The notes under the pieces were generated by a model. The model was not told where the DNA came from. It did no database searches and saw only the letters and a list, made by a program, of their open reading frames with translations. Positions 2,456-53,502 of a stretch of 64,000 nucleotides of DNA are shown here, one piece after another. The translations under genes and the position numbers were made by a program. The number at the start of each line of letters is the position of its first letter. The first letter of the stretch is position 1. The stretch comes from Isurus oxyrinchus (taxonomy: Eukaryota), in contig JANJGN010000021.1 of the NCBI GenBank assembly GCA_026770705.1, positions 79,608,001 through 79,672,000 on the forward strand, given 5' to 3'.

Positions 2456-2509
2456 AAACCTTCACCAACATACTCTACCCAGCGACCGATGACTCCTCTA
2501 TCTGATTGG
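2456..2509 (+). promoter_or_regulatory. Orphan S-X1-X2-Y module (candidate distal enhancer)
   Basis: AAACCTT-15nt-CCCAGCGACCGATG(ACTC)-10nt-CTGATTGG. Confidence 0.6.
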
Positions 2510-2984
2510 CTGTGCGGTAGTCAAGATAATGTTTTCACAACATTCTGGTATTAATCAGACTGTGCAATGTGGAGTCGGATGCACCTTCAGAGACAGGGGT
2601 TTTCCAAAAAACCTCCAATTACCAGCGATGCACAACCTGCCCTTCCTCAGAACTACAAACTACAGGAGTCAATGCCAATTTTCATTCCAGTCCCGGGGAC
2701 AGGAAGGGTTGATAAGGTGACTGGGAAAAGAACCAGAGGCCACATGACAAAACTTCTTTTACACAATGTGTGGTTAGGATTTCTATTTAAGTAATACTCT
2801 GTTTTTTTATTCTTCCAGCCAAAGTGAACAACTTCACATTTTCCCACATTAAACACCATCTGCCGATTTTTGCCCACTCACTGAACCTATCTATCACAAT
2901 CTGTTTAACAACCCATATTCTTAGCATGTGGGCATTCCTGGAAAAGCAGGCACTTGTTGCCCATCCATAATTCCCCTTGAATCA

Positions 2985-3310
2985 TAAAATCATAAAATAG
3001 TCCAGCACAGAATGAGATGATTCGGCTCATTAAATCTGCGTTGACTCAAAGAGCAATCCAATTGTTCCCACTTACCTGCTCTTTTCCCATATCTCTGCAA
3101 AATTTTCTTCTTCAAGCAACTATACAATTCCCTAGTGAGGGTTATTATTGAATCTGCATCCACCGCCCTAACAGACAGTGCATTCCAAATCCTAACCACA
3201 CATTGTGTAAAAGAAGTTTTGTCATGTGGCCTCTGGTTCTTTTCCCAGTCATCTTATCAACCCTTCCTCCATTAGAAACAGTTTGTCCTTATTTACTCCA
3301 TCTAAATCCT
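2985..3310 (-). mobile_element. CR1-type LINE 3' end
   Basis: VVRIWNAL...VDADSI motif and short tandem tail. Confidence 0.7.
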
Positions 3311-3386
3311 TATTTTAAACGTTCAACATGCTGAGCATATCCAACATTTTCTATTTTTAGGCGGAAACTTCTGTTCTGGAGACTAA

Positions 3387-5528
3387 GGGTGGAATTGTCT
3401 CAAATTTGCACTATGTGGAAGTGGGTGGGAAAAAGTATTTCTTACCCGACAGCTGTCATGGTGTCTTTTTGTGCCGTATTGACCCGTTCCTTGTGTATCC
3501 GGCCTAATTCATTGTGCATTCCCGGGAAACACGTCAATATTCGCATACCCCGCCGTCATCTCAGGTCTTCAGTAAACCGGACGCCATATTTGAAGGCCAC
3601 CCCTGCACAGAGCCAGCTCTCTTCAAGGGATAGGAAGATCCTGGGACTTGATGGCTGCCAAAGGGAGGAAACATGCTGCCCCCAGATTTAGCCATGCCTC
3701 CATCGAGTGCCTATTGGACACATTGAAAGCCCGTCACAAAGTCCTCTACTCCCCGCTCTGGGCTGAGACCAGCAAGCCAGGTCACCAATCCAGCATGGGT
3801 GGCGGTGGCAGCGGTGGTCAGTGCCAAAAAAGGATAAATGCTCTCATCTTCTCCACCAGGGTAAGTCACTCTTCTCATCACTCCCAACTCACACACTTAC
3901 AAACCCATCACTCATCCACAGGGATCTCACACCTCAAGGAACAACACCACTAACTCTCACACACACCCTCACATCTCCATCAGGCCTAAATCCTCTTGAG
4001 CTTGGGTCCTCATCCCATCCATGGCCCTACTCACCACACAAACGTTTCACGTAGTGCCATGTGTCCTGCTCGCACTCTCACGATCTGTTTTCATGCAGGA
4101 GAAACTGGTTCACAACAGAGGACCCAGACTGGGGGTGGATGGGCCACATTAGGCCCCTCATTCACTTTGAGGAGTGTGTCATCGCATTGACTGGTGAGGA
4201 CGTGGACTGTGCCTGCAGTGACGGTGAGGTTGGCGATGAACGCCCACGTGAGAATCCTGCACCACATCGTCCCTATCTCAACACAACTGTGAGAGCTCTC
4301 TCTCCTGCTTTTGACTCTGCTGCCATGCATTAATTATCTCTACTTTATCTCACAGGGAGCTCTGCCAAGCGACTGACACCCTCAGCCAGCCATCCAGTCC
4401 CTCAGCTCCATCCAGGTCCTCACCTCCAGCCAAGAGGACACCTCCTCCAGTGAAGAGGTGGAAATAAGCAACCTAGAAGACCCATCACAACGTTTACCCA
4501 CACCCTTCTCCAGCGCAAAGACACATACCTCGGTGGGTCCTAGATCTAGAGCAGGCTCGGGTTCACAATCAGGCGGTCACTGCTTGTATCCACAGCAGGA
4601 GGTAGGTTTGACTGAGCTCCTCACAGCCTTTAAAAAGTACCTGGATGAATACTTGGCACGTCATAACATTCAAGGCTATGGGCCAAGTGCTGGTAAATGG
4701 GATTAAGTAGGTAGGTCAGGTATTTCTCACGTGTCAGTGTAGACTCGATGGGCCGAAGGGCCTTTTCTGCACTGTGATTCTGTGATTCTCTGTGATTCTG
4801 TGAACTCTCCCCCTTACACCTACCTCCCCAGTTGCTGCATTCTCCCCCATTACACCCTCCTTCCTCCATACTCCCTCCCCTGCCCGACCTCAACCCCCCA
4901 CCCCTGACACATTTGCTCCCCCCATCCAACGTCATCACCCTCCCCGGTACACCTTCCTCTCCTACTCACACCTGGACCTTCCTCTTCCCCCCCTCGCCAA
5001 TCATCCGTAGCAGCCCATGGCCAGGACCGTGACATTCCGAAGCAGACCCCAGACATCAACAGAGACCTCCCACCTTCCGTGAGCTGCTTCGTGGTGGAGC
5101 CATGTCCATGAGAATCCTCCCAGCATGCAATGCACATGTTCCTCCAGAGACTGGTAGCTGTAGGGCTCCAGCATCTACTGCCCCTCAGATGTCTGCAATG
5201 TGCAGCAGGACTTGACGGGTAAGTCCCGACTTCTGCACGTCACACTAATTAAGGCATGTTCTGGGCCGGCCTGTTTTCCCACCGACATGGGCGGTAAATT
5301 TGACATGGGGAGATGATTCCAATGGGCAAGTAAGATGATGAGATGCAAGCGCATTGAAATAAGGTTCCTGATGTTGATTGGCGGGAAAGGTGGATCGCCA
5401 TTGATGGGCGGAGTGCATGATGGCTAACTGGTTTCACGATGGCATAAAACTGATTTTGGCCACTTGCCACATTGTCCACTCACGCCTGCCATGATACCAC
5501 ATGTCAACTGGGCTGGAAAATTCCAGCC
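3387..5528 (+). mobile_element. PIF/Harbinger-type DNA transposon, non-autonomous, with Myb/SANT-like ORF remnant
   Basis: Termini GGGTGGAATT / AATTCCAGCC (9/10 inverted match) flanked by TAA at 3384-86 and 5529-31. ORF MAAKGRKHAAPRFSHASIECLL resembles Harbinger Myb-like proteins. A LINE tail is nested at about 4627-4800. Confidence 0.72.
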
Positions 5529-6403
5529 TAAGTGTGGTGGCAGACAAGAAAGTCGGTGTGATTCGTGCGAGCTGTTAGTGTGGATTCTTGCATCAGATTG
5601 TCTGCTTTTCAGCTTCTTATTTATGCATCAACAAGAAGCTTGTCAAACCTTGTGGCTGGGATTTGTCGCTCCTGCCTCATGGGATTGAATGTCCAGGCAC
5701 CACACACACATTCACTCTCTGCAGCCCAGGAATTGTTTTGGCGAATGATACACCCTCATCCCTCCAACCCAAAGAAACAAGCCCTCCGACACCAAATTTA
5801 GTGATAGGTCCCTGGAGTGACACCTCCAGGCAGTCCAGGACCAGCAGGGGATCCTCTATCCTCAGGCCTCCATTGGACATGATAAGATCACCTCAGACAA
5901 CAGGGCCTACTCCCACTGGAGTACGGGTTCCCCACGGGCACTGACTCTCCCCAGGGTATGGGTCACTCCCTCACAGGCACCGACATTCCCTGGGTGTATA
6001 GGTCCCCCCAAGGGATCCGACCTTCCCAGGGGCCTCCCTACAGGACACTCCAAGGTAGTCCAGCTGCTTCAAATCCCTCTCCCCTGTCAGGAGGCTGCGG
6101 ATGTTGGGGATGCACCAATGTGTAGCGGTAGATTTAGAAAAATTAAGCAGTACTGAGAGGTGGCCTGGGTGTCCAATCACTTTGCAGCTTCATGAATATA
6201 TTTTGCTTTTCTGCCTCAAAGTCGCTGCTAGTGAATGGCTCTTCTATGTGATGCAATGTTCTGAGGTCATCCAAGTGTAACAGATGCCTCCCCCCTCCTC
6301 ATGTATCTCCCGTTGTATGTCTCAGTTCTATGTTATCTTGCTCAATCTCAGCTCAGTTTATGTTCATATAAGCGAAATGAACAAAGCCAGTTCCTATTTG
6401 AAC

Positions 6404-6600
6404 TTGAAAACAAAAAATGCTGGAAAAACTCAACAGGCCTGTCAGCATCTGTGGAAAGAGAGAGACAAAGTTAATGTTTCGAGTCCATATAACTCTTCAT
6501 TGTTAACTCTGTCTCTCTCTCCACAGATGCTGTCAGATCTGCTGAGTTTTTCCAGCATTTTTTGTTTTCATTTCAGATTTCCTGCATCCGCAGTATTTTT
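6404..6600. mobile_element. Fold-back mini-element made of two inverted Penelope-like 3' ends
   Basis: Inverted copies of the CAGATGCTG..CTGCTGAGTTTTTCCAGCATTT tail, flanked by a TTCCTAT(T/A)TGAAC duplication. Confidence 0.7.
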
Positions 6601-11470: not shown

Positions 11471-12114
11471 TTTTGTACTTCCCCCTCCCTGGACCGGGAT
11501 CAAGACATGCATGCCAGGCATAGCCCTGTAACATGATCTGCACTGACTCAGGACTGCCTTTAAATTCTGACCTGACAATGTGGTCCACACTGCCCCAGGA
11601 CAGTCTTTAGATTCTGGCCCTGGCATTGTGCACTGCGCTGCCCCAGGTCTGACTCACACTTATCCATGCTCTTCTTTTAACCCCCACCCCCACTCATGTG
11701 TCTCTGTCCACCTCTCCCCTCCCGGATTCCAGTCAATGTCCCAAGTCTAATTTTCCACTGATGAGGCAATTAGATTTGGAGGGGGAACATGATTCCGGAG
11801 AGCTGGGTTTTTAATGAGCATTCATGAGATGCAAAGAGATGCAAATACAGTTTCGGATATAATGCAGTGGTCAACCCAACCCACCGTGAAAGTTGGGAAG
11901 GGATGATTCCAACTTATTTTCCTGCTGGCGGAAAGCTAACTTTTGCCATCACGCCAAATTTTGTGCCTCCACCTTCCACGATTCTCGCCGCTAGCAGGAC
12001 TGGAAAATTCCATGCTTTATTTCAGATTTCCAGCATCTGCAGCATTTTGCTTTTGTCATGTAAGTAAGGAGCAGTGCTGATCTCTCCCTGGGCAATAATT
12101 GCAAACCAACTTTA

Positions 12115-12157
12115 CCCAGCAACTAATGACACCGTTCAGGAACTGGCATTTCATTGG
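12115..12157 (+). promoter_or_regulatory. Orphan X1-X2-Y module (candidate distal enhancer)
   Basis: CCCAGCAACTAATG(ACAC)-21nt-TTCATTGG. Confidence 0.6.
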
Positions 12158-21710: not shown

Positions 21711-21714
21711 AGTA

Positions 21715-22797: not shown

Positions 22798-22921
22798 ATT
22801 GGGGAAGATTTCAAAATCAATAATCTGGGACAATATAAACAGCCTATAATGGACAGTTGCTACAGACCATGAGGTGATAAGGAAATTCTCTTGTATCCAA
22901 ATAAACCTCCAAAATCACATT

Positions 22922-24284: not shown

Positions 24285-24302
24285 CTCCAAAATCACATTC
24301 TG

Positions 24303-24344
24303 CCTAGCAACTGGTGACATATTGCAGTTGTGTAATTTCATTGG
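24303..24344 (+). promoter_or_regulatory. Orphan X1-X2-Y module (candidate distal enhancer), with its S box displaced by a Penelope insertion
   Basis: CCTAGCAACTGGTG(ACAT)-20nt-TTCATTGG. S-like AAACCTC lies at 22903-22909 on the far side of the insertion. Confidence 0.7.
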
Positions 24345-24544
24345 CTGGAGCATGTTTGTCTTTATCGCATATGAATTACAGTTGGCAGATTAAGGCATTG
24401 CAGTAAATCTGTTTATTTGCTGTTTGTAGTCGGGGATTTTCCACTCAAGCCCTTCCCCCACACTGCAATCTGGAGTGAAAGTGGAGCTGTCTTTCTTTGC
24501 AAGCCCTATGTTTCTCAATCTAGTATAAACATACCATATCTTCA

Positions 24545-28643: not shown

Positions 28644-28686
28644 CTTAGCAACTCATGACAAGTGGATATTGGAGGGGTTTCATTGG
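28644..28686 (+). promoter_or_regulatory. Orphan X1-X2-Y module (candidate distal enhancer)
   Basis: CTTAGCAACTCATG(ACAA)-21nt-TTCATTGG, with an AP-1 site TGAGTCA at 28621-28627. Confidence 0.6.
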
Positions 28687-35453: not shown

Positions 35454-35479
35454 TTAACTGACAGCTGGACTCATCAAAC
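35454..35479 (-). CDS. mhc2b: MHC IIB exon 6 coding part (RLMSPAVS*)
   Basis: TTTGTTTCAG| acceptor, then GT TTG ATG AGT CCA GCT GTC AGT TAA. Unique non-repeat sequence (putative 3'UTR) follows. Confidence 0.8.
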
Positions 35480-38400
35480 CTGAAACAAAGATTACCAGGA
35501 TTAGAAAGTGCAGAGCCCATCTACTCAGCACATGCACACACTACTAATGTGAATCACTAAAGGGCACATGGTCAGCCTGCCATTAATCTCAATGGACAGA
35601 TAGCATTGGGCTAGAACTGTACAATACACTAGCACAATGGAGCTCTACAAAATGCACTTGACAGATTGTACAAATTCCACAGAAGCTGCCAAAACCATGG
35701 AAATGATCAAATTTTAGGTGGAGTCAGGGGTCACCTTTGTGATAAAGGAAACCTAGATTAAGATCTTCAGATGGAGTGTTTTCACCAATACGGCTAATCA
35801 GTTTGTGATAGCTTAGGGTCACAGACAGTTTAGCCTTGGGAAAATATCTCCCTAGTTTAAATTCTGTTATAATAGTCAAAACTGACTTCATTTGAAAGCA
35901 CTCACCCCTTCAAATCTAAAATAATTCTCTGCTAGGGTACTTACGTGGGCCGTGATTGCTGGAATCCAGGATTGCTGAAAGGGAAAGTAAACATGATTAG
36001 TTTGTCTGAGATGAAGGTTGTTGCTTTAAGGCCCACTCCAGGATTTTAGCGCAAAATGAGGGGACACTCCAGTGCAGTACTGTGGGAATGCTGCACCTTC
36101 AGAGGTACGAGCTTTCAGGTGAGATGCTAAGAGGCCCATCAAGTGGGTACATGATTCAATATCTTGAATGAGGAACAGGAGAATTATCCTTTGTGCCCTA
36201 AATTTCACCCAACAAATCAATATTAAGATTAGCTAGCTCATGTTTTTCCAGAACAGCCTGACAATCCCACAATACTATATCAAACACAGGGTCCCCATTT
36301 CCCCTTCACAGCCTGCTCTGAACTTCACCTCATTGTCAGTAACCCAGTCAATCTAGCAGCTACCAGACTGTAGAACTTGAAATATGAGTCTGTGTGTGAA
36401 TATATTACCATTTAATACAAGTGGAATTTCAATGAGTCTTGAAAATGTGGCTGTTAAATCTGTAGAACATGGGAGATGAGTATGTTGGTATAGGACCAAA
36501 GCACACTTATATCCTGGGTTACTGTTAGTCCATTATACATCTGGCCCTTTGCTCCTGAACCAAGAAAAATCCTACCCTGATGTTACAGCTACTTTTAACT
36601 GGCAAAATCCTGCTCTGGGATAGTAGGGCAATTGCAAGGAATTTCCTGCTCTGCTTTTAGTGTGGATGGAATGCTAAAGTGCAAAATCCTAGTTACCTTG
36701 TTCTAATTTTTAAAATCATTTACAGGATGTGGGTGTCATTGGCTAGGCCAGCATTTATTACCCATCCTTAATTGCCCTCAGTGAGCTGCCTTCTTGAACT
36801 GCTGCAGTCTTTGGTGTAGGTATATGGAGAGCTGCTAGGGAGGGAGTTCCAGGATTTTGACCCAGTGACAGCGAAGGAACAGTGATATATTTCCAAGTCA
36901 GGATGGAGAGTGTCTTGGAGGGGGAACTTCCAGGTGGTGATGTTCTCATGTATCTCCTGCCCTTGTCCTTCTAGATGGTAGTGGTCATGGTTTGGATGAT
37001 GATGTCTATGGAGCCTTGGTGAGTTTCTGCAGTGCATCTTGTAGATGGTACACATTGCTGCCACTATGCAGTGGTGGAAGGACTGAATGTTTGTGGATGG
37101 GGTGCCAATCAAACAGTTTGCTTTGTCCTGGATGGCATCAAGCTGCTCACGTTGTGGGAGCTGCACTCATCCAGACAAGTGGGGAGTATTCCAGCACACT
37201 CCTGATTTGAGAGTTGTAGATGGTAGACAGGTTTTGGGGAGTCAGGTGATGAGTTACTCACTGCAGGATTCCTAGCCTTTGACCTGCTCTTATATCCAGT
37301 AATTATATGGCCAGTCCAGTTCAGTTTCTGAAAAATGGTAACCCCCAGGATGTTGATAGTGGGGGAAATCAGTGATTAAATGTCAAGTGGCAATGGTTAG
37401 ACTCTCTTGTTGGAGATGGTCATTGCCTGGCACTTTTGCACAATTTTGCTAGGACTTCTTGATAACAGTCAAATGCTGCCTTGATGTCCAGGACAGTCAC
37501 TCAACTTACCTCTTGAGTTCAGCTCTTTTGTCCACAATTGAATCAAGACTATAATGAGGAGCTGACTGACCCTGGCAGAACCCAAATGGAGTATCAGTGA
37601 GCAGTTATTGCTAAGCTAGTGCTTCTTGCAAGCACAGTTGATGACCCCTTCCATTACTTTACTGATGGAGAGTAGACTGATGGGGCAGTAATTGGCCAGG
37701 TTGGATTTGTCCTGATTTGTGTACAGGACATACTTGGGCAATTTTCCACATTGCCAGATAGATGCCAGTGTTGTAGCTCTGCTGGAACAGTTTGGCTAGG
37801 GGCGTGGCAAGTTCTGGAACACAAATCTATCACTAAGTATTATTTTAGGAATATTTTTAGGCTCATGGTGTAATGTGAAAAACAAACTGCAAAGGCCAAG
37901 TCCCAAGGCAACACTAGCTAACTCTCAATGTGAGGGAATTGCCCTGCTAGTAGCAACAATGTCAAATTACTGGATTTCAGGGTAGCATTTGAGACTTAAA
38001 TTGATAACTCTACATTCCCTACCATCAGTTTTACTTTGTATAGTACAATATGAACAGCTTCCAGTTAGCCCAGGGTCAGCCGAAGACAGCAACCTGAGGG
38101 TAGGAGTGCCTTGTACTCTCCACAGAGACAGGAAGAGAATCTCACCTTTAGCATTCTTCAGCTTCATTATCACTCCAGCCAGCAGAATGATCAACCCGAT
38201 CCCAAAGCCCAGGGCTCCAACAATGATCTTGGGTTTCTCTGATTCAGGTGTGCTCTGTACTTCTGTGCAAGTAAAACAAGTGTTAGTGCAGCATTAGGTC
38301 CCCCATGGTAACAAAGCCTGCAGCCACACCACCACAGAATGGGATTCCAACTCAAATCCTTGTTCAGATGGGATTGCAATTGGGGGGGGGGGGGGGGGGG

Positions 38401-41400
38401 TGCACAAGAGAACTGAGAATCTGTAGACAGTGAGCTCAGAGGAGAAAGGGGATGTGCAAGGTGCTGACTGTACTAGACCTCCAAGCACACTCCCACCCTG
38501 TTCCAAAGGGTACTCAAATCCCAGCACTGTAGGGTCTTTTTGTCTAATGGTTAATGTTGTCACATCCTTTCCAAGTGATTATTACACAGGTCCCTGTGAA
38601 TGTGAGCTTAAAGGGACTGACTTCAGCATCCTCAGTGGAAGAGCTGTCATTATTACTATTACCTTCAACCATCTAATAAACTGCTCTGGGTTGGAAATGT
38701 GCATTACTGGATTTGATGGCATGAGAGAAATTGCCAATACTTTACACCGAAATAAGGAATTTCCAGCACTCATTAACCTATTCATCCAGCTATTTGAGCT
38801 GAGGGGTAATCATGGAGTGATTACAATAATTCCACCATGGGAATTTGGGGGACAGAGGAAAGGAGGAGCAGAGTGGGCTCACTGCAATTACAAGTTTAAA
38901 TTCTCAATGTTTACTGAGCTACCATTTCTAGTTAATCACAGGAAGGGATAGATGTTTGGTCCCTGCAGGATGTGTTGAGTAGCAGATGCTATCCCAGACA
39001 AAAATCAACCGTGGGAAATGTCTCCAACTGAGATTACTACAGCTTAAGATATCAGAGGGGGCTTTGGACACAATTGACATCACTATGCAGAATTCTGGAA
39101 CAAACATTTGAGAATATTCATTCCACTGAGATAGGGAGCAGACACTAGTAAGGGAGTGCAAGTTCACAGGTGGTCAAGGGAGGGATTATAGTGACACCTA
39201 AACCAAAAAACAAGGTTCAAGTGTTGGCAGGGGTAATTAATGATTCAGACAGGAATGCCGTAATAAGAAAACTTGATACTTAGAGTGGGTAGAACGATGG
39301 GCATCATTTGCAATCCAGATTTGGTGCTGTTGTCCCTTATCCTAGCTCCTAGGAGTCATTTTGTAAATATAATGGCCAGGGACAGCCACATGGAGCTACT
39401 GGAGATAGGAAAAGGCAGTTGTGAAGGATGGTAATCTCTGGATGCCAGCTATGATCCAGGATAGGAAGATCAGGAAGTTCAACATATGGCTAATTTTAAA
39501 ATTCTCTTTAATGGGATGTGGGTTGTGCTAGATAGGCCAGCATTTATTGCCCATCCCCAATTGCCCTTAAGGTGGTGAGCTACCTTCTTGAGCTGCTGCA
39601 ATCCACGTTGTGTAGGTACACCCAGTGTTGTTAGGGAGTGCCAGGATTTTGGCCCAACAGTGAAGGAACAGCAATATATTTCCAAGTCAGAATGGTGAGT
39701 GATTTGGAGGGGAACTTGCAGATGGCATTCCCATGTGTCTGCTGCCCTTGTCCTTCTAGATGGTAGTGGTCATGGGTTTGGAAGGTGCTGTTAAGGAGCC
39801 TTGGTGAGCTAGTGCTGTATATCTTGTAGATAGTGGCTGCTGCCACTGTCAGTGGATGGCAGAGACATTGAAGGGGGTGGAAGGGGTACCAATCAAGCTG
39901 GCTGCTTTGTCCGGGATGGTGTCAAGCGTCTTCTATTGCTGGAGCTGCACATCCAGGCAACTGGAGAGAAATGTTCTATTTAATGGGGTATTGACACTAG
40001 CTTTGGGAAGGATAGATAACACTTGAACAGGACAAGTGCTAATGAAATAGAGAAAAAATAAAAAGAATTATTTAAACCAACAAGAAAGCACAAGGAAAAT
40101 AAAACAATTCAGAATGAACAAAGGTTGTTCTAAATATAGATTTGGAAGTATAAATAGAAGGTAAGCATGCAATTTGCACAGTTTAGGTTTAAAAACTTAT
40201 TTAAAATGTTGCACATCAAATGGATCAAGTCATAAAATACTGGGTTTTATGGTCATAGATATCAAATATAAAAGCTGAGATGCAAGGGTTTGTGTTTAAA
40301 GCTCTACAACCCATTTGCAAAAGCTGTAGTATGTTATACTATGTCTCTTACCCCAGTCAACACTCCTGGGCTCATTCAGGCTGATGTGTTCCACGCGGCA
40401 GGTATATTTATCCCCAGACACTGGTTGATATTGGAGGAGTTCCTCCACTTGATAGGTCCAGTCACCATCTGATAACAGGGCAGTGTTGAGGACACTATCA
40501 GGAAGTGGCACACCATTTTTCAGCCACGTGACTTTGATTTTGGAAGGGTAAAATCCAGTGACACGACACGAGAGCAGGGCCGACTGTCCAGAATGTTGGG
40601 AGATTTTAGGTCGGACTGTGACTGTAGGTTTGACTGGAACAGAAAGAAAGAGGTAACTTTAGAATCCAAGAAAAGCAGAGTATAATGATAATAAATGATT
40701 TCTTTCATGTCTGATTCGCTCAGCCACTGATATCGGTCTACAGTTAATATCAGACAATATCCTTGTCTATAAGTTTCATTCTTAATTTTGATGAAGATCA
40801 ATCTATGGAAAAAAGGCAGGGATTTCCATTGACTAATGACAGATATATTGTAAACTATTTGCAGTACCAAATATTCACGGTGCAAAAACCTCTGCATAAC
40901 CCACACCAGGGAAGTGATGTTAGATTCACTGACTGCAGTCTACACTGGGCTGCACTACCTCCAAACTGAGATCCGTATTGTGTAACCAATTCTGCAGAAA
41001 CATTGGACTCTCATGGCCATGGTTTTATTTGGTTTAGATCTATTAAGTTGAGCAATTATCTTGAATAATAGGAAGCTAATGGGCTTCAGTAGGTTCAGTG
41101 CAACCAGTCTGGTTCCAATGCATTTGGCTGAACACTGAGCAGCACTGACATGGTTAACAGGAGGAGGCAGAGGTCTCTGGGTAACTCAGCAGCTAAACCT
41201 CCCAGGCCATCATCACAACTGGCCAATGCAATACTAGCAAGAGAGCAGGTCCTGGTAGCCACCAATTTATTGACACCTTGATGATAGAAAGGCCATCTTC
41301 AGATGCTGCAGAAGGTGCTAAGGAGCCAACCACATCCCAGGATCCCTCCCAAGGATCTGCCTTCCACTGGGGCAGCACAAGTGGAAATTAGAGACCTTCA

Positions 41401-44400
41401 CATTATCACCATGGGAGGAACCAAACCATTAAAGGCGTCTACCAAATAAACTAGGCCCATGGATTGAACCTTGGTGCTGCAGTTTGTTTCATCCCACATT
41501 ACTGTTTCAGGCTATAACTGAATATGTGGAGATGGGGGGGTGGGGGGGACAGTACTGGCACTGGGTAATACATGGGGGATGGAGACAGCAACAATAGTGC
41601 AGTATAATGGAGAATGTTAGACTAAGTCCCATAGAGGGTTGACTGTAATAGTCTGATGTCATGGAAAGAAGTGACAGACTCTGATCACAAGTGCAAGAGA
41701 AGGAGCATGAAAAGGAGCTAGTGTAGGGAATGCAGCAAGTCCTCACTAAGTCAGCCCACTTAGCATTGACTTTAATGCCATTTATTCTTGTGTCTTTTCA
41801 ATTTACATTGCCATTTAATGTTGTCTGCACCCATCCCCCAACCATGCTGCACTCTGGGCCAGCCACTGCCATGCTCTGATGCCAGAGACACCAGTCACCA
41901 GAGACCCAGGCTGTGGAGAGAGAGCAAGGCCTGAGATCTAGGAGCAGAAGTGCTTGGCTGGGATGGGGAAGCTGCCAGTCACCAATTGGTGATGAACTGC
42001 AAGTAACCCAGGCCAGCTGCAACCCCTCTGGCTTCTCCCACAACCTTCTGAAAACTGAGGAAGGGGTCCAGGCTGGAGGAGAGGGGCTTGGAAGTTGGAG
42101 AAATACAATTCCCACTGTTCTCCCCACCACTCCCAAAGAATCACTCAACAGCTTCTCCCCCTCATTCAAGCAACTCCTGCCCCATATCCAAGCTCACTCT
42201 GGCCCTCCCACTCCTTTGTACTTCTGTGAAACAGCTTCACCAGAATGTCAACCTCACCAGGCTGGGTAAAAAAAGTCAAAAATTTCCTTTTGGTAAATCT
42301 GGCATTACATAAAAGTACCCTTTTAAGACAACACATTGAAGATGGTAGGGCATTGAGGAGGCAGTTAATAAGGCATATAGTATCTTAGGCTTTAATAGGG
42401 GCATTGAGTACAGAGTAAGGAGGTCACGTTGAACTTATATAAGACACTAGTTATGCCTCATCTGGAGTACTGCATCCAGTTCTGGGCGCTGTACTGAGGA
42501 TGTGAAGACATTGGAGAGTGTACAGAGGAGATTCACAAGAGTGATTCCAGGCATAAAGAACTGTAGCTATGAGATAGATTGGAGGGGTTGGGCTTGTTTT
42601 CCTTAGAGAAGAAAGGAGGATGAGAGGAGACTTGATTGAGGTATTCAAGATCCTGAGGGTGTGGACAGGGGAAATAGTGAGAAACTGTTTCCACTCAAGA
42701 GCATCAAGAACTAGAGGGCACAGATTCAAAATAATTGGCAAAAGGAGTAAAAGTGATGCAAGGAAATTTTTTCATGCAAAGGGTGGCTGGAGTCTGGAAC
42801 AAACTTCAAGAGGGTGGTGGAGGCAGGTTCAATTGAGATATTCAAAAGGTTTGCTATCTGAAAAGAGAACATGCAAGGTTACAGAGATAAGGCAGGGGAG
42901 TGGAACCAGAGAGAATGCCCTTCTGAGTGCCAGTGCAGACATGGGTTGAAGGACCTTTTGCACTGTAAACGTTCTGATATGCTTTACCTTGGGAGCAAAA
43001 GTACTGCACATTGGGAACCACCTAACTAGCTAAACTGTTCTTCAAAAGCCAAAATGGACATGACAGGCCGAATGGCCTCCATCTGTGCTTTAACCATTCT
43101 ATGACTCAAGAACATGAATTGGAGTCAACAGGGGCCTGAAACAGCAATTTGACTTGTTTGAGCGCTCGGAGGAACATCCTAACCTCAACCCCACCCTCAT
43201 CAGCCACAATAACTTTGAAGAGGGGGCAGTGCGACACTGGAACAGAGCCCAAAGAGCCCTGCAGCAAGGGACGTACCAGAGAAATGTGCAAGAATATCCT
43301 CGAACGGAAGTGGGACAGTCGCAGGGGGCATGGGGAAAAGAGGGAGAAGAGTCACTCTGGGGCATAGGCCGTAGCCTCACTTCACAAAGGCCGTGACAGG
43401 GGGAATGCGGGTCAGCGTGGGGGTGGGACACAGGCCCCCGCTCCCCCCGGGTCAGCGTGGGGGGACGGGGGGGGGGACACAGGCCCCCGCTCCCCCCGGG
43501 TCAGCGTGGGGGGGGGGGGGGGGGGGGGGGGACACAGGCCCCCGCTCCCCCCGGGTCAGCGTGGGGGGGGGGGGGGGGGGGGGAGACACAGGCCCCCGCT
43601 CCCCCCGGGTCAGCGTGGGGGGGGGGGGGGGGGGGGGGACACAGGCCCCCGCTCCCCCCGGGTCAGCGTGGGGGGGGGGGGGGGACACAGGCCCCCGCTC
43701 CCCCCGGGTCAGCGTGGGGGGGGGGGGGGACACAGGCCCCCGCTCCCCCCGGGTCAGCGTGGGGGGGGGGGGGGACACAGGCCCCCGCTCCCCCCGGGTC
43801 AGCGTGGGGGGGGGGGGGGGACACAGGCCCCCGCTCCCCCCGGGTCAGCGTGGGGGGGGGGGGGGACACAGGCCCCCGCTCCCCCCGGGTCAGCGTGGGG
43901 GGGGGGGGGGGACACAGGCCCCCGCTCCCCCCGGGTCAGCGTGGGGGGGGGGGGGGGGGACACAGGCCCCCGCTCCCCCCGGGTCAGCGTGGGGGGGGGG
44001 GGGGACACAGGCCCCCGCTCCCCCCGGGTCAGCGTGGGCGGGGGGACACAGGCCCCCGCTCCCCCCGGGTCAGCGTGGGCGGGGGGACACAGGCCCCCGC
44101 TCCCCCCGTGGGGGGGGGGGGGGGGGGGACACAGGGCCTCCTGACATTCAGCACCGCTCCCCACCCGGTTGCAGAGGTGCCCGGTGACAGGGAGTGTCCG
44201 GTGGGTGGATGGTGCCGGCTTCCCCCGCCCCCGGTGCTGGGGGGGGGGGGGGGGGGGGGGGGGGCGGTGACAGACAGGTCACAGTGAGGGGCTTCCCCCA
44301 ACCCCCTCCCGGGTCTCACCTCCTCCACCCACCAGCTCCCCCCGGGTCTAACCTCCTCCACCCACCAGCTCCCCCCGGGTCTCACCTCCTCCACCCCCAC

Positions 44401-47400
44401 CCCCCCCCACCCACCCCCCCCGGGTCTCACCTCTCCGGGTCAGAACCTCACTCTCATAGATCGGAATGTTATTCTGACAGACGCCGATCGCTTCCTGGTA
44501 CGTCGCTTCCGCGCTCTCTTGATTCCATCTGTCCACATTACTCTTCGTCCAATCCTTCACCGCGATGTACTTCTTCTGGGCAAAGTCGAAATACACGATC
44601 AGCTCTTGATCATAGACAAACTGATAAATAGAGGTCCAGGTCCCGGTGCTGTTAAACTTACATCCGAAAATCCGGTTATAGGTGTGAGCCCCTGAGAGAG
44701 AGAGAGAGAGAGAGAGAGAGTTACTGACCGACACACCCGACCCCAGGGTGGGGATAAAATCCTCTGGTCCGAAGCGACTCCTTCACGGGGAGGGAAATCA
44801 AACTTCACTCGGGGCTCGGGGGCGGCGCAATTCGGGCAGCTCCCATTGCCGGGGGGGTGGGCTCAGCCTTCAAACCGGGCCCCGTCTCTAACCCAGCAGC
44901 AGGAAGGCGGAGGCCAGTCCCCAGCCCATCCCGAGGGGGCGGGGTGGGGGGGGTTGGGAACCGATCACTGCATCACTGGAAACTTGTGTTTCTCCCATTC
45001 ATTCAGTCTCGGCACCCGAGTCTCACTGATGCAGCAAGCATGCCAGCTACAACTGGAATGACAGCAGGAAATGGGCCATCCCACCCAAACCACAAATCCA
45101 AGTCGTTCTGCATTCTAAAGGGACCATTCCTTCCACAACACCCTGGTCCACTCCTCAATCACTCGTCCCCTTCCCACAGCACCTTTGCAAACACAGGAAA
45201 TGCAACACCAACCCTTCTCACCAAGGACCAAACTCCACTCCCAGCTGGATCAGCAATTTACTCTTTCAAATTAGTATATTGCACAATGTAGTCCTCTACA
45301 TGCCACCCAATCTGCATTTTATATCCCCAATGTTCCTTCTAATTGTCCCAACGTGTGGAATCAGTTTTGTGTACTCGACCAGAAAACAAAACTATTACCC
45401 AGATCAGGCCTGCACATGACTCCAGACCTACAGCAATGTAGTTGACTTGTAACTACTGAGCTCGCCTAGCAAGTCACCCAGTCGTCAAGGGGCAGCTCAC
45501 CACCACCTTCAAGGTGACTTAGGGATGGGCAATAAATGCTGGCCTAGCCAGTTACACCCACATCCTGTAAAAAAAAACTTAACTGTCTTTGGGATATCCT
45601 GAGATGTCCCAAGGTGCTACAAAATTGCAAATTCTTCGGAATGGTTACAGCACAGAAGGGGGTCATTCAGTCCACCATGCCTATGCTGGCTGCCTTCTTC
45701 AGCAACCCAGTTAGTCCCACTGTCCTGCCATTTCCCACACTTGAATTAGTCTCCACCATAATCCCAGACAGTGCATTCCAGATCTTACTTGCTGCAGAAA
45801 AAGCTTCACCACCTGTTGCCATTGGGTCTTTTGATAATCATCTTAAATCAGTGTCCTCCAGTTCCCAGCCTGCCCACCAATGGGAACAGATTCTGTGCCT
45901 TCCTCAGACCTGTTCAAAATGAGGGGGTCTATCAAATTGCCTCTAATATCTTCTCTTCTCCAAGGAGAAGAGCTCCAGCATCTGTCCACATAACCGAAGT
46001 CCCTCATCCCAGGAATCACTTGTAAATGGTGTTACTATGTACAGAAACTGAGGCAAATCTGCAGTGGAATGGGAGTTCTTCTAGTCAGGATTTTTGCAGG
46101 TATTTACATTGTTTGAGAAACCTTGTTGCCCTGCATAGCTAGTATTCCTTATGTTATTCATAGTTCTTATTGATTAAAACATGATTTACAGTTGAGGGTT
46201 TGCTGGTTGTGTATTATGTTTGAAGATTAATTGTTAGAGTTGACTATGTAATGGCAGAGTAGGATGCCCCATATTGCTGAAATACTTATTCCAGCCAACA
46301 CTACACCCTCAAGAAAACAAAATTAAGAGCTAAGAAGAGTCTCAATTGATCAAGCTTGTCATTACCTTGTCAATAACAATTAAATACTGTTTTCTGACAG
46401 CCATTTGGTTCTATAAAGGGAGGACGAGGCAACCATGGCTGACAAGGGAAGTCAGGGACAGCATAAAAGCTAAAGAGAAAGCATAAAATGCAGCGAAGAG
46501 CAGTGGAAAACCAGGAGATTGGGAAGCTTACAAAGGCCAACAGAGGACAACTAAAAAAGAAATGAGGGAGAAGATTAAATATAAGGGTAAACGAGCCAAT
46601 ATAAAATGAGTTTTTTTAAAGATATATAAAGGGTAAGAGGCAAAAGTGGACATTGGGCCACTGGAAAATGACACTGGAGAAGTAGTAGTGGGGAGCAAAG
46701 AAATGGCAGAGGAACTGAATAGGTACTTTGCACCAGTCTTCACAGCGGAAGATATGAGTGACATCTCCAAAGTTCAAGAGAGTTGGGGGGCAGAGGCGAG
46801 TATGGTGGCCATTACCAAGGAGAAGATGCTAGGAAAACTGAAAGGTCTGAAGGTGGATAACTCACCTGGGCCAGATGGATTACACCCCAGAGTTCTGAAG
46901 GAGATAGCTGAAGAGATAGTGGAGGCATTAGTGGTGATCTTTCAGGAATCACTGGAATCAGGGAGGGTTCCAGAGGACTGGAAAATTGCTAATGTAATCC
47001 CCCTGTTTAAGGAGGGAGTGAGGCAAAAGACAGGAAATTACAGGCAGATTAGCCTGACCTCGGTTGTTGGTAAGATTTTAGAGTCCATTATTAAGGATGA
47101 GATTTCAGAATACTTGGAAGTGCAAGGTAAAATAGGGCAAAGTCAGCATGATTGTCAAGGAGAGGTCATGCCTGACAAATCTGTTAGAATTCTTTGAGGA
47201 GGTAACAAGCAGGTTAGTCAAAGGAGAGCCAATGAATGTTATCTACTTGGACTTCCAGAAGGCCTTTGACAAGGTGCCACACAGGAGGCTGCTCAGTAAG
47301 ATAAGAGGCCATAGTGTTAGAGGCAAGGTACTAGCATGGATAGAAGATTGGCTGTCTGGCAGGAAGCAGAGAATGGGGGCAAGGGGGGTCCTTCTCAGGA

Positions 47401-50400: not shown

Positions 50401-52573
50401 GAATACTGGTGGAGGAATGAGGCTGCAGGGTCTGCCTTCCTTTCCAGTTAAGGTTCTGAAGGATTGGAAGTATCATAATATTAGTTGTTCCCCTCCTATT
50501 AATAAAACTATAATAATATAAGCTAGTCTCTAATGGTGACAGAAATCAGATTGTTGCAAAAACCCATCTAGGTCACTGATGTCCTTTAGGGAAGGAAATC
50601 TGCCATCCTTATTTGGTCTGGCCTACATGTGACTCCAGATTCACAGCAATGTGGTTGACTCTTAAGTGCCCTCTGAAATGGTCTAGCAAGCTACTCAGTT
50701 CAAGGGCAATTAGGGATGGGCAACAAATACTGGCCTTGCCATCAACACTCACATCCCATAGGAGAATTTAAAAAGTGACCCCCAACATACTACCTAAAGT
50801 TGCAATAGCTGGAGGGTCTTGCAGCTAAACAATTTCTAATATCAATATGGTAAAGTAATTGAAAAGTGATAATTCAGTGAAAAATAATAGTGAATACATC
50901 ACATGCATTTTACATCATATATACATTTTACATCATCTATACAAACAAAATTCAGGCTTACATAGATAAGCTAAAATTTAGTATCACTGGGCACTCCTAG
51001 GAGTAGGTACCATAACTTCACTACCAAACTTTACTATCCACTGGACTAGTAATTTAGAGGTCCAGGGCAATGCTCTGGCAACTTAGGTTCAAATCCCACT
51101 GCAGCAGCTGGTGGAATTTGAGTTCAGTTAATAATATCTAGAACATAAAGCTAGTTTCAGTATAGTATAGTGACCATGTCAATTGTCATAAAAACCCATC
51201 TGGTTCACTATCGTCTGTTAGGAAAAGAAATCTGCTGTCCTTACCTGGTCTGGCCCTCTGCAATGGCCTTGTAAGCCACTTAATTCAAGGGCACTTAGGG
51301 GTGGGCAACAAACCCATAGGCCTTGGCAGTGACATCCACATCCCATGAAAGAAAGAATTTTAAAAATCCACTTAAATAACTGTGTAACCATAAGATTTAT
51401 TTATTGAAAAAAAGTGACTTCCAGTTGTTCCAGAAGTTGTACTGATCAACCTATTATAAACTGTGAAACTTGGCTTTAATATTAGAGAACAGATTTCCAG
51501 TGAAATGCAATAAATTTCTTAGTCTGTCATAATCCAACAGCTAGCAATAACTCCACACTGCATGCTAGCTTTAATCTGAACCCTCAGCTTCTCACAGGGG
51601 TGGAGGTGGGGCAAGGAAAAAAAAAGACTTTCTGCCACTGTTCCAAGTATAGAATGCCCAAAATGGAGATAAGCAATTTAACAAGTAATATCCTGGCATG
51701 CCAATTAATTTGGCTCAAATATTAGAAATAGGCTCTGGTCAACATCATTGACCCTTAGTTCACTGAATCCAATTACAAACTACAAGCATCATTACTACTA
51801 AAAGCAAAACACAACAGATACTGAAATTGTCAAGTCAGATAACTCTGTTTCTCCCTCTACAGATGCTAACATTTCAGGCTGATGACTTTTCATCACAACT
51901 GGAAAAAGTTAGAGATGCAACAGGTTTTAAGTATGTCAGAGGCAGAGGAAGGAAACAAACACGAAAATGGTGGAAGGCAGGAGAGATTAAATGACAAGGA
52001 GGTAATGGTACAAGACAAACAAAGATTTTTAATAGGACAAATAAAGAAAGAAATATATAATACAAGCTCACTTATGCATGACAAATAAGTAAAAAATTTC
52101 AAACTTCACAATGGCACCAGACAATAGACCTTTCCTGGGCTCCTCAGTGAGGAAGAAGTGAGCAGAGATCGGGTGTGAGAATTTACACCTGTTCATCAGT
52201 AAAACCCATTTTTAAAAATCATTAAAAAAGAGTCAAGGTGAGGTTATTAGTAGCTGAGTACAGGAATGATCAGAGACAGCCCAAACCCCCTGACCCTTTA
52301 TCAGAGATAAGGTTATTACTGGGCTGGGGTTTCCCTGAAAAGCAGCAAGAGTCCTGGGAATGATCTCTGATAATTTTAATGGGTTTAACTGTCGGGTTTC
52401 CCACTGAGTTTAGTTTAATTCGGGTCTCTCTCCTCCCCACAGACTCTGACTCCCCCCGGGCGGCACTTACCAACCCCGTTGTCTCCCTGCCCATTGAAGA
52501 TGAGTGAGACGCATATGAAGAACGGGATCCTGAACCAGAGAGAACGGGGACCAATGACCCTGAACAGCGACAT
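35454..52573 (-). CDS. mhc2b: MHC class II beta chain gene, 6 coding exons: join(52573..52471,44691..44431,40633..40352,38262..38146,35974..35945,35479..35454), 272 aa
   Basis: Assembled by hand. All five introns are GT..AG and phase 1, and the frame is open from ATG to TAA. Domain order is leader, beta1, beta2 (IgC1), TM and two cytoplasmic exons, as expected for class II B genes. Confidence 0.96.
35945..35974 (-). CDS. mhc2b: MHC IIB exon 5 (cytoplasmic, AILDSSNHGP)
   Basis: 30-nt phase-1 exon between CTTTCCCTTTCAG| and |GTAAGT; keeps the frame. Confidence 0.82.
36005..36230 (+). mobile_element. DeuSINE-like (SacSINE1/AmnSINE-type) remnant in intron 4
   Basis: GACACTCCAGTGCAGTACTGTGGGAATGCTGCAC resembles the Deu-domain as I recall it. 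Confidence 0.55.
36710..37830 (-). mobile_element. LINE (second family), internally deleted, in intron 4
   Basis: Homologous to 25268-26900. Confidence 0.82.
38146..38262 (-). CDS. mhc2b: MHC IIB exon 4 (connecting peptide + transmembrane)
   Basis: EVQSTPESEKPKIIVGALGFGIGLIILLAGVIMKLKNAK, with the class II beta glycine-patterned TM. Splice sites are GCACAG| and |GTGAGA. Confidence 0.95.
39495..39970 (-). mobile_element. LINE 3' fragment in intron 3
   Basis: Homologous to the 3' part of 25268-26900. Confidence 0.8.
40352..40633 (-). CDS. mhc2b: MHC IIB exon 3 (beta2 Ig C1 domain)
   Basis: 282 nt: VKPTVTV...LLSCRVTGFYPSKIKVTWLKNG...DGDWTYQ...YTCRVEHISL...VDW. Acceptor is TTCCAG|; donor is |GTAAGA. 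Confidence 0.97.
42350..42980 (+). mobile_element. CR1-type LINE 3' fragment in intron 2
   Basis: MRGDLIEVFKIL..RTRGHRFK. Confidence 0.82.
43408..44135. repeat. GC-rich minisatellite, about 15 units of GACACAGGCCCCCGCTCCCCCCGGGTCAGCGT + G(n)
   Basis: Read directly; invariant core with variable poly-G spacers. Confidence 0.97.
44308..44435. repeat. 33-bp-type repeat that reiterates the exon 2 splice donor
   Basis: CCCGGGTCT(C/A)ACCTC occurs four times, the last copy being the real donor. Confidence 0.9.
44431..44691 (-). CDS. mhc2b: MHC IIB exon 2 (beta1 peptide-binding domain)
   Basis: GAHTYNRIFGCKFNSTGTW...DRWN...CQNNIPIYESEVLTRR has the C15-C79 pair, an NST glycosylation site, W61 and N82. 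Acceptor is (CT)nCAG; donor is G|GTGAGA. Confidence 0.97.
44694..44720. repeat. (GA)n microsatellite forming the polypyrimidine tract of the exon 2 acceptor
   Basis: Read directly. Confidence 0.95.
46410..48405 (+). mobile_element. CR1-type LINE, relatively young, in intron 1
   Basis: SPGPDGLHPRVLKE, YLDFQKAFDKVPH and KFADDTK motifs; few frameshifts. Confidence 0.92.
48900..49810 (-). mobile_element. LINE endonuclease-region remnant in intron 1
   Basis: Minus strand gives an APE-like GDFNV motif and the downstream linker region of the second LINE family. Confidence 0.6.
52471..52573 (-). CDS. mhc2b: MHC IIB exon 1 (leader): MSLFRVIGPRSLWFRIPFFICVSLIFNGQGDNGV
   Basis: Hydrophobic leader ending G|GTAAGT (phase 1). 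It lies just downstream of a TATA-like element and the CCAAT/X-box promoter. Confidence 0.88.
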
Positions 52574-52630
52574 TCCGAAGTAAGATCGAGAAGCAAACCC
52601 CGAACTGAAAGTGACAGAGAATGAGCGGGC

Positions 52631-52977
52631 TTTAAATAGGGAGCAAGTAAAGAGAGACCAATCAGAACTTGGCACAGAGTGACCAATCAGAGTCAGGTAA
52701 AGGGCGCTCAATCAGAACCAGGCACGCAACGACCAATCAGAGCAAGGAAAAAGGGTCGAATCCGCTCCAGGTAAAGAGAGACCAGCCAGAGAGAGGATAG
52801 AACGACCAATCAAAGTCCGGAGTTAGACTGCGGGGAGCCCAATTAAGGCCAGGCAATGGCCAGAGCGTGTCCAATTAAAGCCGAGGTATTGGCAGAAAGC
52901 GGCCAATCAATGCCGGCGGGTGGGAGGCGAAAGGTACCAATCAGGGCCGTAGAACACATTCGTCACCTGTTACCCGG
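52631..52977 (-). promoter_or_regulatory. MHC IIB proximal promoter: TATA-like element, CCAAT/Y-box array and X1-X2-Y module
   Basis: TATTTAAA at 52638-52631. Eight perfect ATTGG on the gene strand between 52658 and 52941. CCGGGTAACAGGTG (X1, overlapping TGACG X2), 19 bp, then CTGATTGG (Y). Confidence 0.85.
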
Positions 52978-53068
52978 CCGAAGTGAACCAGGGAATAAGA
53001 ATAAGAAACAAAAACAGAATTACCTGGAAAAACTCAGCAGGTCTGGCAGCATCGGCGGAGAAGAAAAG

Positions 53069-53107
53069 AGTTGACGTTTCGAGTCCTCATGACCCTTCCA
53101 CAGAACT
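53069..53107 (-). ncRNA. Minimal hammerhead ribozyme motif (Penelope)
   Basis: AGTT-CTGTGGA-A-GGGTC-ATGAG-GACTC-GAAAC-GTC-AACT. Confidence 0.65.
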
Positions 53108-53280
53108 GGGTGAGTCCAGGAAAGAGTTGAAATATAAGCTGGTTTAGGGGAGGGTTGGGGGGGGCGGTGGGCGGCGGAGAGAGATAGAAGTGGAGGGATT
53201 GGTGTGGTTGTAGGGACAAACAAGCAGTAACCCGCCCCCCTAAACCAGCTTATATTTCACCCCTTTCCTGGACTTACTCA

Positions 53281-53319
53281 AGTTCTGTCGAAGGGTCATG
53301 AGGACTCGAAACGTCAACT
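53281..53319 (+). ncRNA. Minimal hammerhead ribozyme motif (Penelope)
   Basis: AGTT-CTGTCGA-A-GGGTC-ATGAG-GACTC-GAAAC-GTC-AACT. Confidence 0.65.
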
Positions 53320-53438
53320 CTTTTCTTCTCCGCCGATGCTGCCGGACCTGCTGAGTTTTTCCAGGGAATAAGAACCTGTGATGACCCCGCTGTTGTAAGG
53401 CTCAAATAGACCACTCAGAGTTAGAACCGGACGACAAC

Positions 53439-53502
53439 CCAATTGTAGCCAGCCACAGCTAATCGTCATCTGTTGCCAGGCGGTTGGTTTATTTAAAGTT
53501 GC
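53439..53502 (-). promoter_or_regulatory. Second, upstream X1-X2-Y module of MHC IIB
   Basis: CCTGGCAACAGATG (13/14 to the HLA-DRA X box CCTAGCAACAGATG), TGACG X2 half-site, and ATTGG at the same distance as in DRA. Weak S-like GCAACTT 15 nt upstream. Confidence 0.8.

Follow-up and report, generated by a model that had tools for sequence, protein, structure and literature searches.

Six X1-X2-Y composite motifs around a shark MHC class II beta gene, a candidate class II enhancer array

Introduction

Mammalian class II genes are coactivated through a composite module at each promoter and through extra distal copies of that module, and the S box of the mammalian module helps to recruit CIITA. 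Masternak et al. reportedly described distal S-Y (S'-Y') enhancers in the human MHC class II locus in 2003. Such distal S-Y enhancers, active in either orientation, are established for the human class II locus and for the invariant chain (Ii) gene (Krawczyk et al. 2004, as cited in PMC1802633; review, PMC7866136). Matches to an S-Y profile have been reported to be reliable predictors of RFX/CIITA enhancers that work in both orientations (PMC1802633; PMC7866136). The S-X-Y module of human class II genes is described as promoter-proximal, and strict X-Y spacing is stated for MHC modules (PMC7866136; PMC1802633). Induction of class II in zebrafish and salmon reportedly proceeds via IRF1/ISRE and not via the enhanceosome (PMC7573153). 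The presence of the motif is therefore no guarantee of mammalian-type use, and this bony-fish work, which suggests interferon-driven IRF1/ISRE control, bears on the age of the mammalian design. CIITA and NLRC5 orthologues have been reported in the whale shark (PMC8455134). The literature searched contained no account of regulatory modules in shark class II genes, and the main paper on elasmobranch MHC organization mentions neither promoters nor SXY. Here, we describe six X1-X2-Y composites surrounding a class II beta gene of the shark Isurus oxyrinchus.

Results and Discussion

The window, by which we mean the whole 64-kb stretch of DNA analyzed, contains no N. Exon-by-exon matching to reference class II proteins identified a classical class II beta gene of six exons on the minus strand, running from 52573 to about 35454. 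Exon 1 (52471..52573) carries the ATG and a leader that aligns to P0007, and it ends in a phase-1 donor, GTAAGT. Exon 2 (44431..44691) encodes the beta1 domain, exon 3 (40352..40633; 282 bases) the beta2 Ig C1 domain, exon 4 (38146..38262) the connecting peptide and transmembrane segment, and exon 5 (35945..35974) cytoplasmic sequence. The coding part of exon 6 (35454..35479) reads RLMSPAVS followed by a stop codon, matching the C termini of P0007 and P0006. A TATA-like element, TATTTAAA (52631..52638, minus strand), precedes the ATG by about 58 bases. Between it and the nearest module, m5, nine ATTGG (Y-type) boxes were detected on the same strand (52640..52941): the first is the Y box of m5 itself, the upstream boxes are 32 to 34 bases apart, and the spacing near the TATA-like element falls to about 25.

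All six motifs that the earlier note had placed in this region were recovered at the coordinates and on the strands that it gave; we refer to them as m1 to m6 in order of position. On the plus strand, m1 (2478..2510) joins the X1-X2 box CCCAGCGACCGATGAC to the Y box CTGATTGG across a short spacer, with an offset of 24 from the X1 core to ATTGG. The next three plus-strand modules, each with a spacer, share the Y box TTTCATTGG: m2 (12115..12157; X1-X2 CCCAGCAACTAATGAC; offset, 35), m3 (24303..24344; CCTAGCAACTGGTGAC; offset, 34), and m4 (28644..28686; CTTAGCAACTCATGAC; offset, 35, with an extra ATTGG at offset 21). On the minus strand, m5 (52937..52977) has the X1-X2 box CCGGGTAACAGGTGACGAA, the weakest X1 of the six, followed after a spacer by CTGATTGG at offset 33, and m6 (53439..53480) has CCTGGCAACAGATGACGAT, a spacer, and the Y box CAATTGG at offset 34. 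The X1 boxes were judged as RFX5-type half-sites resembling CCYAGCAACAGATG, and five of the six lie within two mismatches of CCTAGCAACNGATGAC (0.11 expected), with four mismatches in m5. TGAC, a half-site only, overlaps the end of X1 in every module: in m5 and m6 it takes the form TGACG (CRE half-site), and in m1 to m4 the form TGACA/T. Of the seven X1-X2 cores in the window, six are followed on the same strand by ATTGG (inverted CCAAT). The offset is 33 to 35 in five modules; the Y box of m1 is closer by exactly one helical turn (10 less than in the others). The X-Y spacer lengths first given were each 1 below our counts from the end of TGAC to ATTGG (11, 22, 21, 22, 20, and 21). Because the discrepancy is always 1, it is only definitional.

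These motifs are real, non-random X1-X2-Y composites. At up to two mismatches, CCTAGCAACNGATGAC matched five times in the window versus 0.11 expected, and five or more matches arose in 0 of 100 shuffles. The string AGCAACNNNTGAC followed after 15 to 25 bases by TTTCATTGG matched three times (0.00 expected). A looser core, RGYRACNNNTGAC, was found seven times (0.7 expected), six of them with ATTGG at 8 to 24 bases, versus 0.02 expected and a maximum of 1 over 300 shuffles. In leave-one-out weight-matrix scans, every module stayed within the top six, with m5 (52977) marginal at a score of 19.5 versus 18.7 for the best background site.

Could chance, or an old dispersed repeat carrying X- and Y-like words, nevertheless have produced these matches? 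We regard this as extremely improbable, given six composites where 0.02 per window is expected. Spacer identity between modules was 0.34, compared with 0.33 in shuffles, and self-BLAST and local alignments detected no flank homology among modules beyond a retroelement tail adjoining m3 and m5. Spacers and flanks are therefore no more similar than shuffled DNA, which argues against a repeat family, as do the absence of the composite from the many transposon copies in the window and the single-copy depth of the m4 island both in this shark and in a close relative. The description of the modules as sitting in unique islands between transposons was likewise borne out: reverse transcriptase, integrase, protease, and GIY-YIG open reading frames lie between them, repeats flank them, and the island at 28644 has single-copy depth.

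Since spacer identity is at shuffle level and the flanks are unrelated, motif and spacing have been kept while neutral positions are saturated. Modules m2 to m4 have preserved their spacing and at least 19 motif positions, and the sharing of TTTCATTGG by these three modules across unrelated spacers, also pointed out in the earlier note, was confirmed. Its proposal that this pattern fits selection on the motifs is supported as well: if factor binding were under selection, motif and spacing would be expected to persist within otherwise randomized sequence, as seen here. In the close relative, where m4 alone was readable, all 19 core positions of this module are identical. Three non-core differences fall in or next to the module, compared with six across the other 534 bases; this comparison gives no sign of extra constraint on m4, and a divergence of ∼1.6% gives it no power.

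We compared the shark modules with the described human elements. As with the human distal S-Y enhancers, free-standing X-Y composites are spread over tens of kilobases in addition to a promoter module, some modules are inverted relative to the gene with the same box order, and the X-to-Y distance is equal to the human one within 1 base (m1 excepted). In contrast to the human elements, the shark modules belong to a cartilaginous fish; their four distal copies share one orientation, and all are 3' of the single gene in view; they have no conserved S box; the distal X2 is TGACA/T and not a CRE; TTTCATTGG is common to three modules; and one Y box is a helical turn nearer. The HLA-DRA promoter module (W/S-X-X2-Y) is most like m6, which faces the gene, has an equal ATTGG offset (CCTGGCAACAGATGACG versus human CCTAGCAACAGATGCGTCA), and is the closest match among the modules to the human X1-X2 box. 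The human offset, 34, was derived from the literature strings CCTAGCAACAGATGCGTCATCTC and TCTCAAAATATTTTTCTGATTGG, with the junction presumed to lie at their common TCTC. Unlike the HLA-DRA module, m5 and m6 lie about 300 and about 800 bases, respectively, from the TATA-like element, and the Y-box array and a fold-back retroelement insert part them from it. Human XL elements such as XL9 are also intergenic RFX-type sites within the class II region (PMC7866136); whereas they consist of an X box alone and some act via CTCF, the shark sites carry the full X1-X2-Y composite.

Upstream of X1, no motif column corresponding to a W/S box was conserved across the six modules. The only S-like match at the expected place is TTGCAA, 18 bases upstream of the X1 core in m2; a second GGCAAC occurs in m6, 23 bases upstream, and in m3 and m5 the expected S position is taken up by retroelement tail. 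Because no S box is conserved, we call these sequences X-Y modules and not proven S-X-Y modules. Retroelement tails lie directly 5' of three of the six modules, in the same orientation, at tail-to-X distances of 19, 32, and 55 bases; Penelope-like tails end 19 bases before the start of m3 and 32 bases before m5. The fold-back insert (53009..53369), made of two inverted Penelope-like tails, parts m6 from m5. We considered 3' transduction, in which a Penelope-like element would have carried a flank along with its tail, and rejected it: the sequence following the tail is unrelated in 10 of 10 tails, which also speaks against a repeat origin of the motifs, and the three tail-to-X distances differ. 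Possibly the modules are factor bound and open in the germline, which would account for retroelement 3' tails having inserted 19 to 55 bases 5' of three modules in matching orientation.

In each module, RFX would recognize the X1 half-site, a CREB/AP-1-type factor the TGAC half-site that overlaps it, and NF-Y the inverted CCAAT box, which lies at a fixed distance. We think it somewhat probable that all six are genuine X1-X2-Y composites of the MHC enhanceosome type, with predicted RFX, CREB/AP-1, and NF-Y sites, and that the distal four serve as distal enhancers. Under this proposal, m6 (53480) and m5 (52977) would be part of the class II beta upstream control region. The distal four would be cooperatively bound by RFX, a bZIP factor, and NF-Y and would act as orientation-independent distal enhancers of one or more class II genes, which could be the beta gene, a partner beyond the window, or both. 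Our inferences from the motifs concern factor binding, recruitment of CIITA, activity as enhancers, and the identity of the target gene. Of the earlier proposal of an MHC class II enhancer array, the real, non-random, non-repeat composites with kept motif and spacing stand, but no conserved S box accompanies them; its "locus control system" label is an interpretation and not a finding.

The locations of the modules relative to the gene bear on this proposal. Upstream of the start of the beta gene lie m5 and m6, while m1 to m4 lie 6.8 to 33 kb beyond its stop codon and 3' end, with no exon after them. The four plus-strand copies are indeed on the strand opposite to the beta gene, as previously stated, but they are downstream (3') of it and not upstream. 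We considered, and rejected, the idea that the distal modules belong to additional class II genes: a tblastn search with 150 representatives, including alpha-beta fusions, detected no further class II or C1-set exons in the window, where only the beta gene and transposon fragments matched, and no class II alpha gene is present within these 64 kb. The distal four are therefore not promoters of recognizable class II genes. They might instead be orphaned promoters, now non-functional, left behind when the coding parts of class II genes (or of other SXY-driven genes) were lost. The number of alpha and beta copies in elasmobranch class II regions varies among species from one to four, making gene loss plausible (PMC10751288), the shared orientation of the four is as expected of tandem gene copies, and retroelements have heavily invaded the region. 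However, no trace of a class II exon was detected nearby, even at E-value thresholds relaxed from below 0.01 to 10, and neutral decay would not produce the retention of motif and spacing amid randomized spacers and flanks that is seen in m2 to m4. We consider such orphaning unlikely, though it is possible that the distal modules originated as promoters and were then kept as enhancers.

A further alternative is that the modules bind RFX-family, AP-1/bZIP, and NF-Y proteins but act outside CIITA and class II, as general or germline regulatory elements or as boundary elements. This would fit the lack of a conserved S box and a distal X2 that is TGACA/T and not CRE-type TGACG. The position of three modules just 3' of retroelement tails could reflect germline-open chromatin, and in humans, some X-box-like elements are CTCF-bound insulators (PMC7866136). 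Nevertheless, composites with X and Y spaced as in human modules are a specific feature of MHC-type modules (PMC1802633), and these sites adjoin a class II gene; we judge a role outside class II to be quite unlikely.

The distal S-Y element of human DRA is known to show extragenic transcription. The plus-strand modules could also be promoters of unannotated plus-strand transcripts, either non-coding RNAs or those of a gene diverged beyond recognition, which we rate as very unlikely. Consistent with this idea, short low-depth contigs in runs presumed to be RNA were found just downstream of m3 (24325-24480) and m4 (28733-28879), and m2 and m4 are each followed by a GT donor (at about 12349 and about 28841, respectively). 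In contrast, the RNA nature of those runs is a guess, comparable scattered contigs occur elsewhere in unique sequence, and splice joints were not seen. The apparent "donor" after m4 coincides with the edge of an inverted-repeat element (28844-29527), no open reading frame of a Pfam family follows the modules, and they have no consistent TATA box or initiator.

If the distal modules are enhancers, as we favor, they bear on the history of class II regulation. Mammal-like X1-X2-Y modules in a shark, with spacing within one base and in several free-standing copies, point to a design ancestral to jawed vertebrates. Judged from these motifs, the data suggest that scattered multimodule X-Y control at human-identical phasing may already have existed in the ancestor shared by sharks and mammals, and that the mammalian design of a promoter switch plus several distant ones may be about 450 million years old. 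The shark modules are short, defined sequences that can be used directly in existing assays based on human CIITA- or RFX5-deficient cells.

We also surveyed kappaB-consensus sites, of which the whole window contains only 14. Matches in m2 and m4 were looser and not significant. A perfect GGGRNNYYCC follows the Y box in m1 and m3 only: GGGGTTTTCC (2596..2605, plus strand) lies at +86 from the m1 Y box, and GGGATTTTCC (24433..24442, plus strand) at +89 from that of m3.

Six X1-X2-Y modules in the window

All six motifs described in the earlier note, each an RFX-type X1 site with an overlapping TGAC half-site (X2) and a downstream Y box (ATTGG, the inverted CCAAT of NF-Y), match exactly the positions and strands claimed for them. 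On the plus strand, the distal four carry the X1-X2 sequences CCCAGCGACCGATGAC at 2478 (m1), CCCAGCAACTAATGAC at 12115 (m2), CCTAGCAACTGGTGAC at 24303 (m3), and CTTAGCAACTCATGAC at 28644 (m4), followed by ATTGG after 11, 22, 21, and 22 bases, respectively. On the minus strand, the promoter pair consists of CCGGGTAACAGGTGAC at 52977 (m5) and CCTGGCAACAGATGAC at 53480 (m6), with ATTGG after 20 and 21 bases. The X-Y spacer lengths claimed earlier are each 1 below this recount, a constant offset due to a different start of count. Measured from the X1 core, the distance to ATTGG is 35, 34, 35, 33, and 34 bases in m2 to m6 and 24 bases in m1, exactly one helical turn shorter. Two subtypes can be told apart: GGYAAC with a CRE-type TGACG in the promoter pair, and AGCRAC with TGACA/T in the distal four, three of which have TTTCATTGG.

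The X1-X2 pattern put forward in the earlier note, with up to 2 mismatches, occurs 5 times in the window versus 0.11 expected, and 0 of 100 shuffles of the window had at least 5 matches. AGCAACNNNTGAC followed by TTTCATTGG at 15 to 25 bases was found three times in the window, with none expected. The looser core RGYRACNNNTGAC matched 7 times (0.7 expected), and ATTGG lies within 8 to 24 bases after 6 of these 7 (0.02 expected; maximum of 1 in 300 shuffles). In leave-one-out scans with a composite weight matrix (X1-X2, a gap of 6 to 18, then Y), each module remained among the six best sites of the window; the margin was narrow when m5 was left out of the matrix (score of 19.5 versus 18.7 for the best background site). 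The match counts and these scans thus bear out the six-motif observation, with m5 as its weak member, and the number of modules excludes chance. The weight-matrix scan found no further X1-X2-Y module elsewhere in the 64 kb.

Repeats, islands, and flanks

Pairwise spacer identity among the modules was 0.34, compared with 0.33 for shuffled spacers, and similarity among module flanks (150 to 200 bases) was not above that of shuffles, the sole exception being a Penelope-like tail upstream of m3 and m5. These values agree with the claims that the modules are not a repeat family and that three of them have a common Y box, TTTCATTGG, with unrelated spacers. Their placement in unique islands between transposons was also upheld: open reading frames for reverse transcriptase, integrase, protease, and GIY-YIG lie between modules, and public contigs on 24000-29900 show transposons at repeat-level depth and the m4 island at single-copy depth (4 to 43) in the source species and a related species. 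The islands of m1 to m4 span approximately 2379-2700, 12071-12555, 24285-24551, and 28531-28843. The randomized spacers and flanks exclude recent common descent of the modules. It is barely credible that the motifs are chance matches or an old dispersed repeat: the former is contradicted by the six core-plus-ATTGG composites against the shuffle expectation, the latter by spacers and flanks without homology and by the low depth of the m4 island.

Tails of Penelope-like retroelements lie at 12016-12070, 24140-24284, and 53009-53149, with others at approximately 6405, 6570, 11351, 15904, 29908, and 53369. Modules m2, m3, and m5 begin 55, 19, and 32 bases downstream of such a 3' tail in shared orientation, and there are only ∼10 tails in 64 kb. 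We rejected 3' transduction: the sequences after the window's other tails are unrelated, as is the sequence following the tail in each case, so the modules were not carried by that element. The proximity may have arisen because the retroelement targets DNA that is open and bound by factors, or because transposons have trimmed the islands to a functional minimum.

The m1 island comprises 401 bases between 133-base direct repeats (2246-2378 and 2780-2912; 97.7% identical), each containing a LINE fragment 5' end and 18 more bases. An 82-base inverted repeat pair (2701-2782 and 3187-3268; 98.8%) overlaps the right side of this region; the arrangement is a recent rearrangement. Right after the m4 island begins a low-copy element (28844-29527) with 87-base inverted ends (95% identical). 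In both species, contigs from presumed RNA runs break at 29190 without a splice signal, one of them having 2191 bases at a depth of 49.

Position of the modules relative to the class II beta gene

The window holds one class II gene, of classical beta type, on the minus strand. Its first exon (52573-52471) begins with the ATG, ends in a phase-1 donor, and lies downstream of a TATA-like element, TATTTAAA (52638-52631). Exon 2 (beta1) lies at 44691-44431, exon 3 (beta2, 282 bases) at 40633-40352, exon 4 at 38262-38146, and exon 5 at 35974-35945; the last exon, the sixth, begins at 35479 with the codons for RLMSPAVS and a stop. This model rests on exon-by-exon reference searches. The 273-residue class II beta protein P0007 aligns to every part of the gene, including the leader (RSLWFRIPFFICVSLIFNGQGDNGVG in the gene versus RSLWFRVALLFCSLLLRGQHDVGVG in P0007), and the other close relative is a skate "DR-1 beta chain-like" protein. 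Two repeats in intron 2 (within 43408-44408) give rise to long spurious open reading frames on both strands: a minisatellite rich in G/C, with ∼12 copies of a 45/91-base unit, and a 33-base repeat that immediately follows exon 2.

Both m5 and m6 lie upstream of the gene and are oriented towards it, at unusually long distances of ∼300 and ∼800 bases from the TATA-like element; a 361-base fold-back insert falls between m6 and that element. Between m5 and the TATA-like element are nine minus-strand ATTGG boxes (52640-52941), spaced ∼32 to 34 bases apart upstream and ∼25 near the TATA, which Tandem Repeats Finder did not call an array.

Modules m1 to m4 lie 6.8 to 33 kb past the stop codon on the opposite strand. 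Searches with 150 representative proteins, alpha-beta fusions included, detected no class II or C1-set exon in the window apart from those of this gene, and no class II alpha gene was found within the 64 kb; hence none of the distal four is the promoter of a recognizable class II gene. Descent from promoters of lost class II genes would account for their shared orientation but is unlikely, since it leaves intact motifs amid saturated spacers unexplained and no exon remnant is present in the window. That the modules are promoters of unannotated transcripts is very unlikely: the support consists of contigs that are short, low in depth, and derived from presumed RNA runs, and such contigs cover other unique stretches too.

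Comparison with known class II control elements

In mammals, the S-X-X2-Y module is bound cooperatively by RFX, CREB, and NF-Y to form a platform for CIITA, and the order, orientation, and spacing of its boxes are all fixed (PMC7866136; PMC1802633). According to one report, RFX and CIITA also bind additional distal S-Y modules of the class II locus and the invariant chain gene; these modules are enhancers active in either orientation, and sequence-profile matches predict such enhancers reliably (PMC1802633). A CIITA orthologue has been reported in the whale shark (PMC8455134). In teleosts, IRF1/ISRE rather than the enhanceosome has been held responsible for inducing class II genes, which speaks against a mammalian-type reading here (PMC7573153). 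Among known systems, the array comes closest to the distal S-Y enhancers of humans and to the promoter module of the DRA type. The distance from X1 core to ATTGG is 34 in human HLA-DRA and 33 to 35 in m2 to m6, the human value being obtained by a presumed join, at their common TCTC, of CCTAGCAACAGATGCGTCATCTC (PMC4806502) and TCTCAAAATATTTTTCTGATTGG, a string that occurs in an HLA-DRA paper. We found no literature on X-Y modules of this kind in cartilaginous fish, and the main paper on elasmobranch MHC organization mentions neither promoters nor SXY (PMC10751288).

The six modules share no S box at a constant position upstream of X1; they are therefore named X-Y modules and are strictly that. 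TTGCAA stands 18 bases upstream in m2 only, and the human S-to-X distance is probably also 18 bases; the expected S position of m3 and of m5 is taken up by a retroelement tail. Use of these RFX/bZIP/NF-Y sites outside MHC regulation would agree with the missing S box and with the non-CRE X2, although we consider it quite unlikely.

What the modules retain is the three boxes, their order, strand, and X-Y distance. Motif and phasing kept amid a saturated background are the hallmark of selection for factors that bind cooperatively, and on this pattern we read all six as predicted working X1-X2-Y elements. From binding onward, the mechanism would most likely be that of mammals, with RFX, CREB, and NF-Y as a platform for CIITA. 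Most likely, m6 and m5 would serve as the beta gene's own upstream control, and m1 to m4 as distal enhancers of this gene and/or of a partner gene outside the window. The array bears on the age of the mammalian class II control design, and its modules are sequences directly open to testing.

The m4 module in a related species and other nearby sites

The related species shares ∼40% of 31-mers with the source species. Its m4 island differs from that of the window at 9 of 579 bases, a divergence (∼1.6%) that is uninformative on constraint either way and at which 0 of 19 core positions differ. At 28654, a noncore position of X1, C>G brings the relative nearer the consensus, and two further differences directly follow ATTGG (28687-28688 TA>CT). 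The relative's m4 reads CTTAGCAACTGATGAC ... TTTCATTGGCT and is nearer the consensus than the window copy at all three differing positions.

Perfect kappaB-consensus sites, only 14 of which occur in the window, were seen on the module strand 86 bases after the m1 Y box (GGGGTTTTCC, 2596-2605) and 89 bases after the m3 Y box (GGGATTTTCC, 24433-24442); the sequence from Y box to site is not conserved between the two. Palindromic pairs of IRF-like half-sites lie downstream of m2 (CTTTCACATGAAACT, 12264-12282) and m4 (AGAAACTGCTGGTTTCT, 28746-28762).
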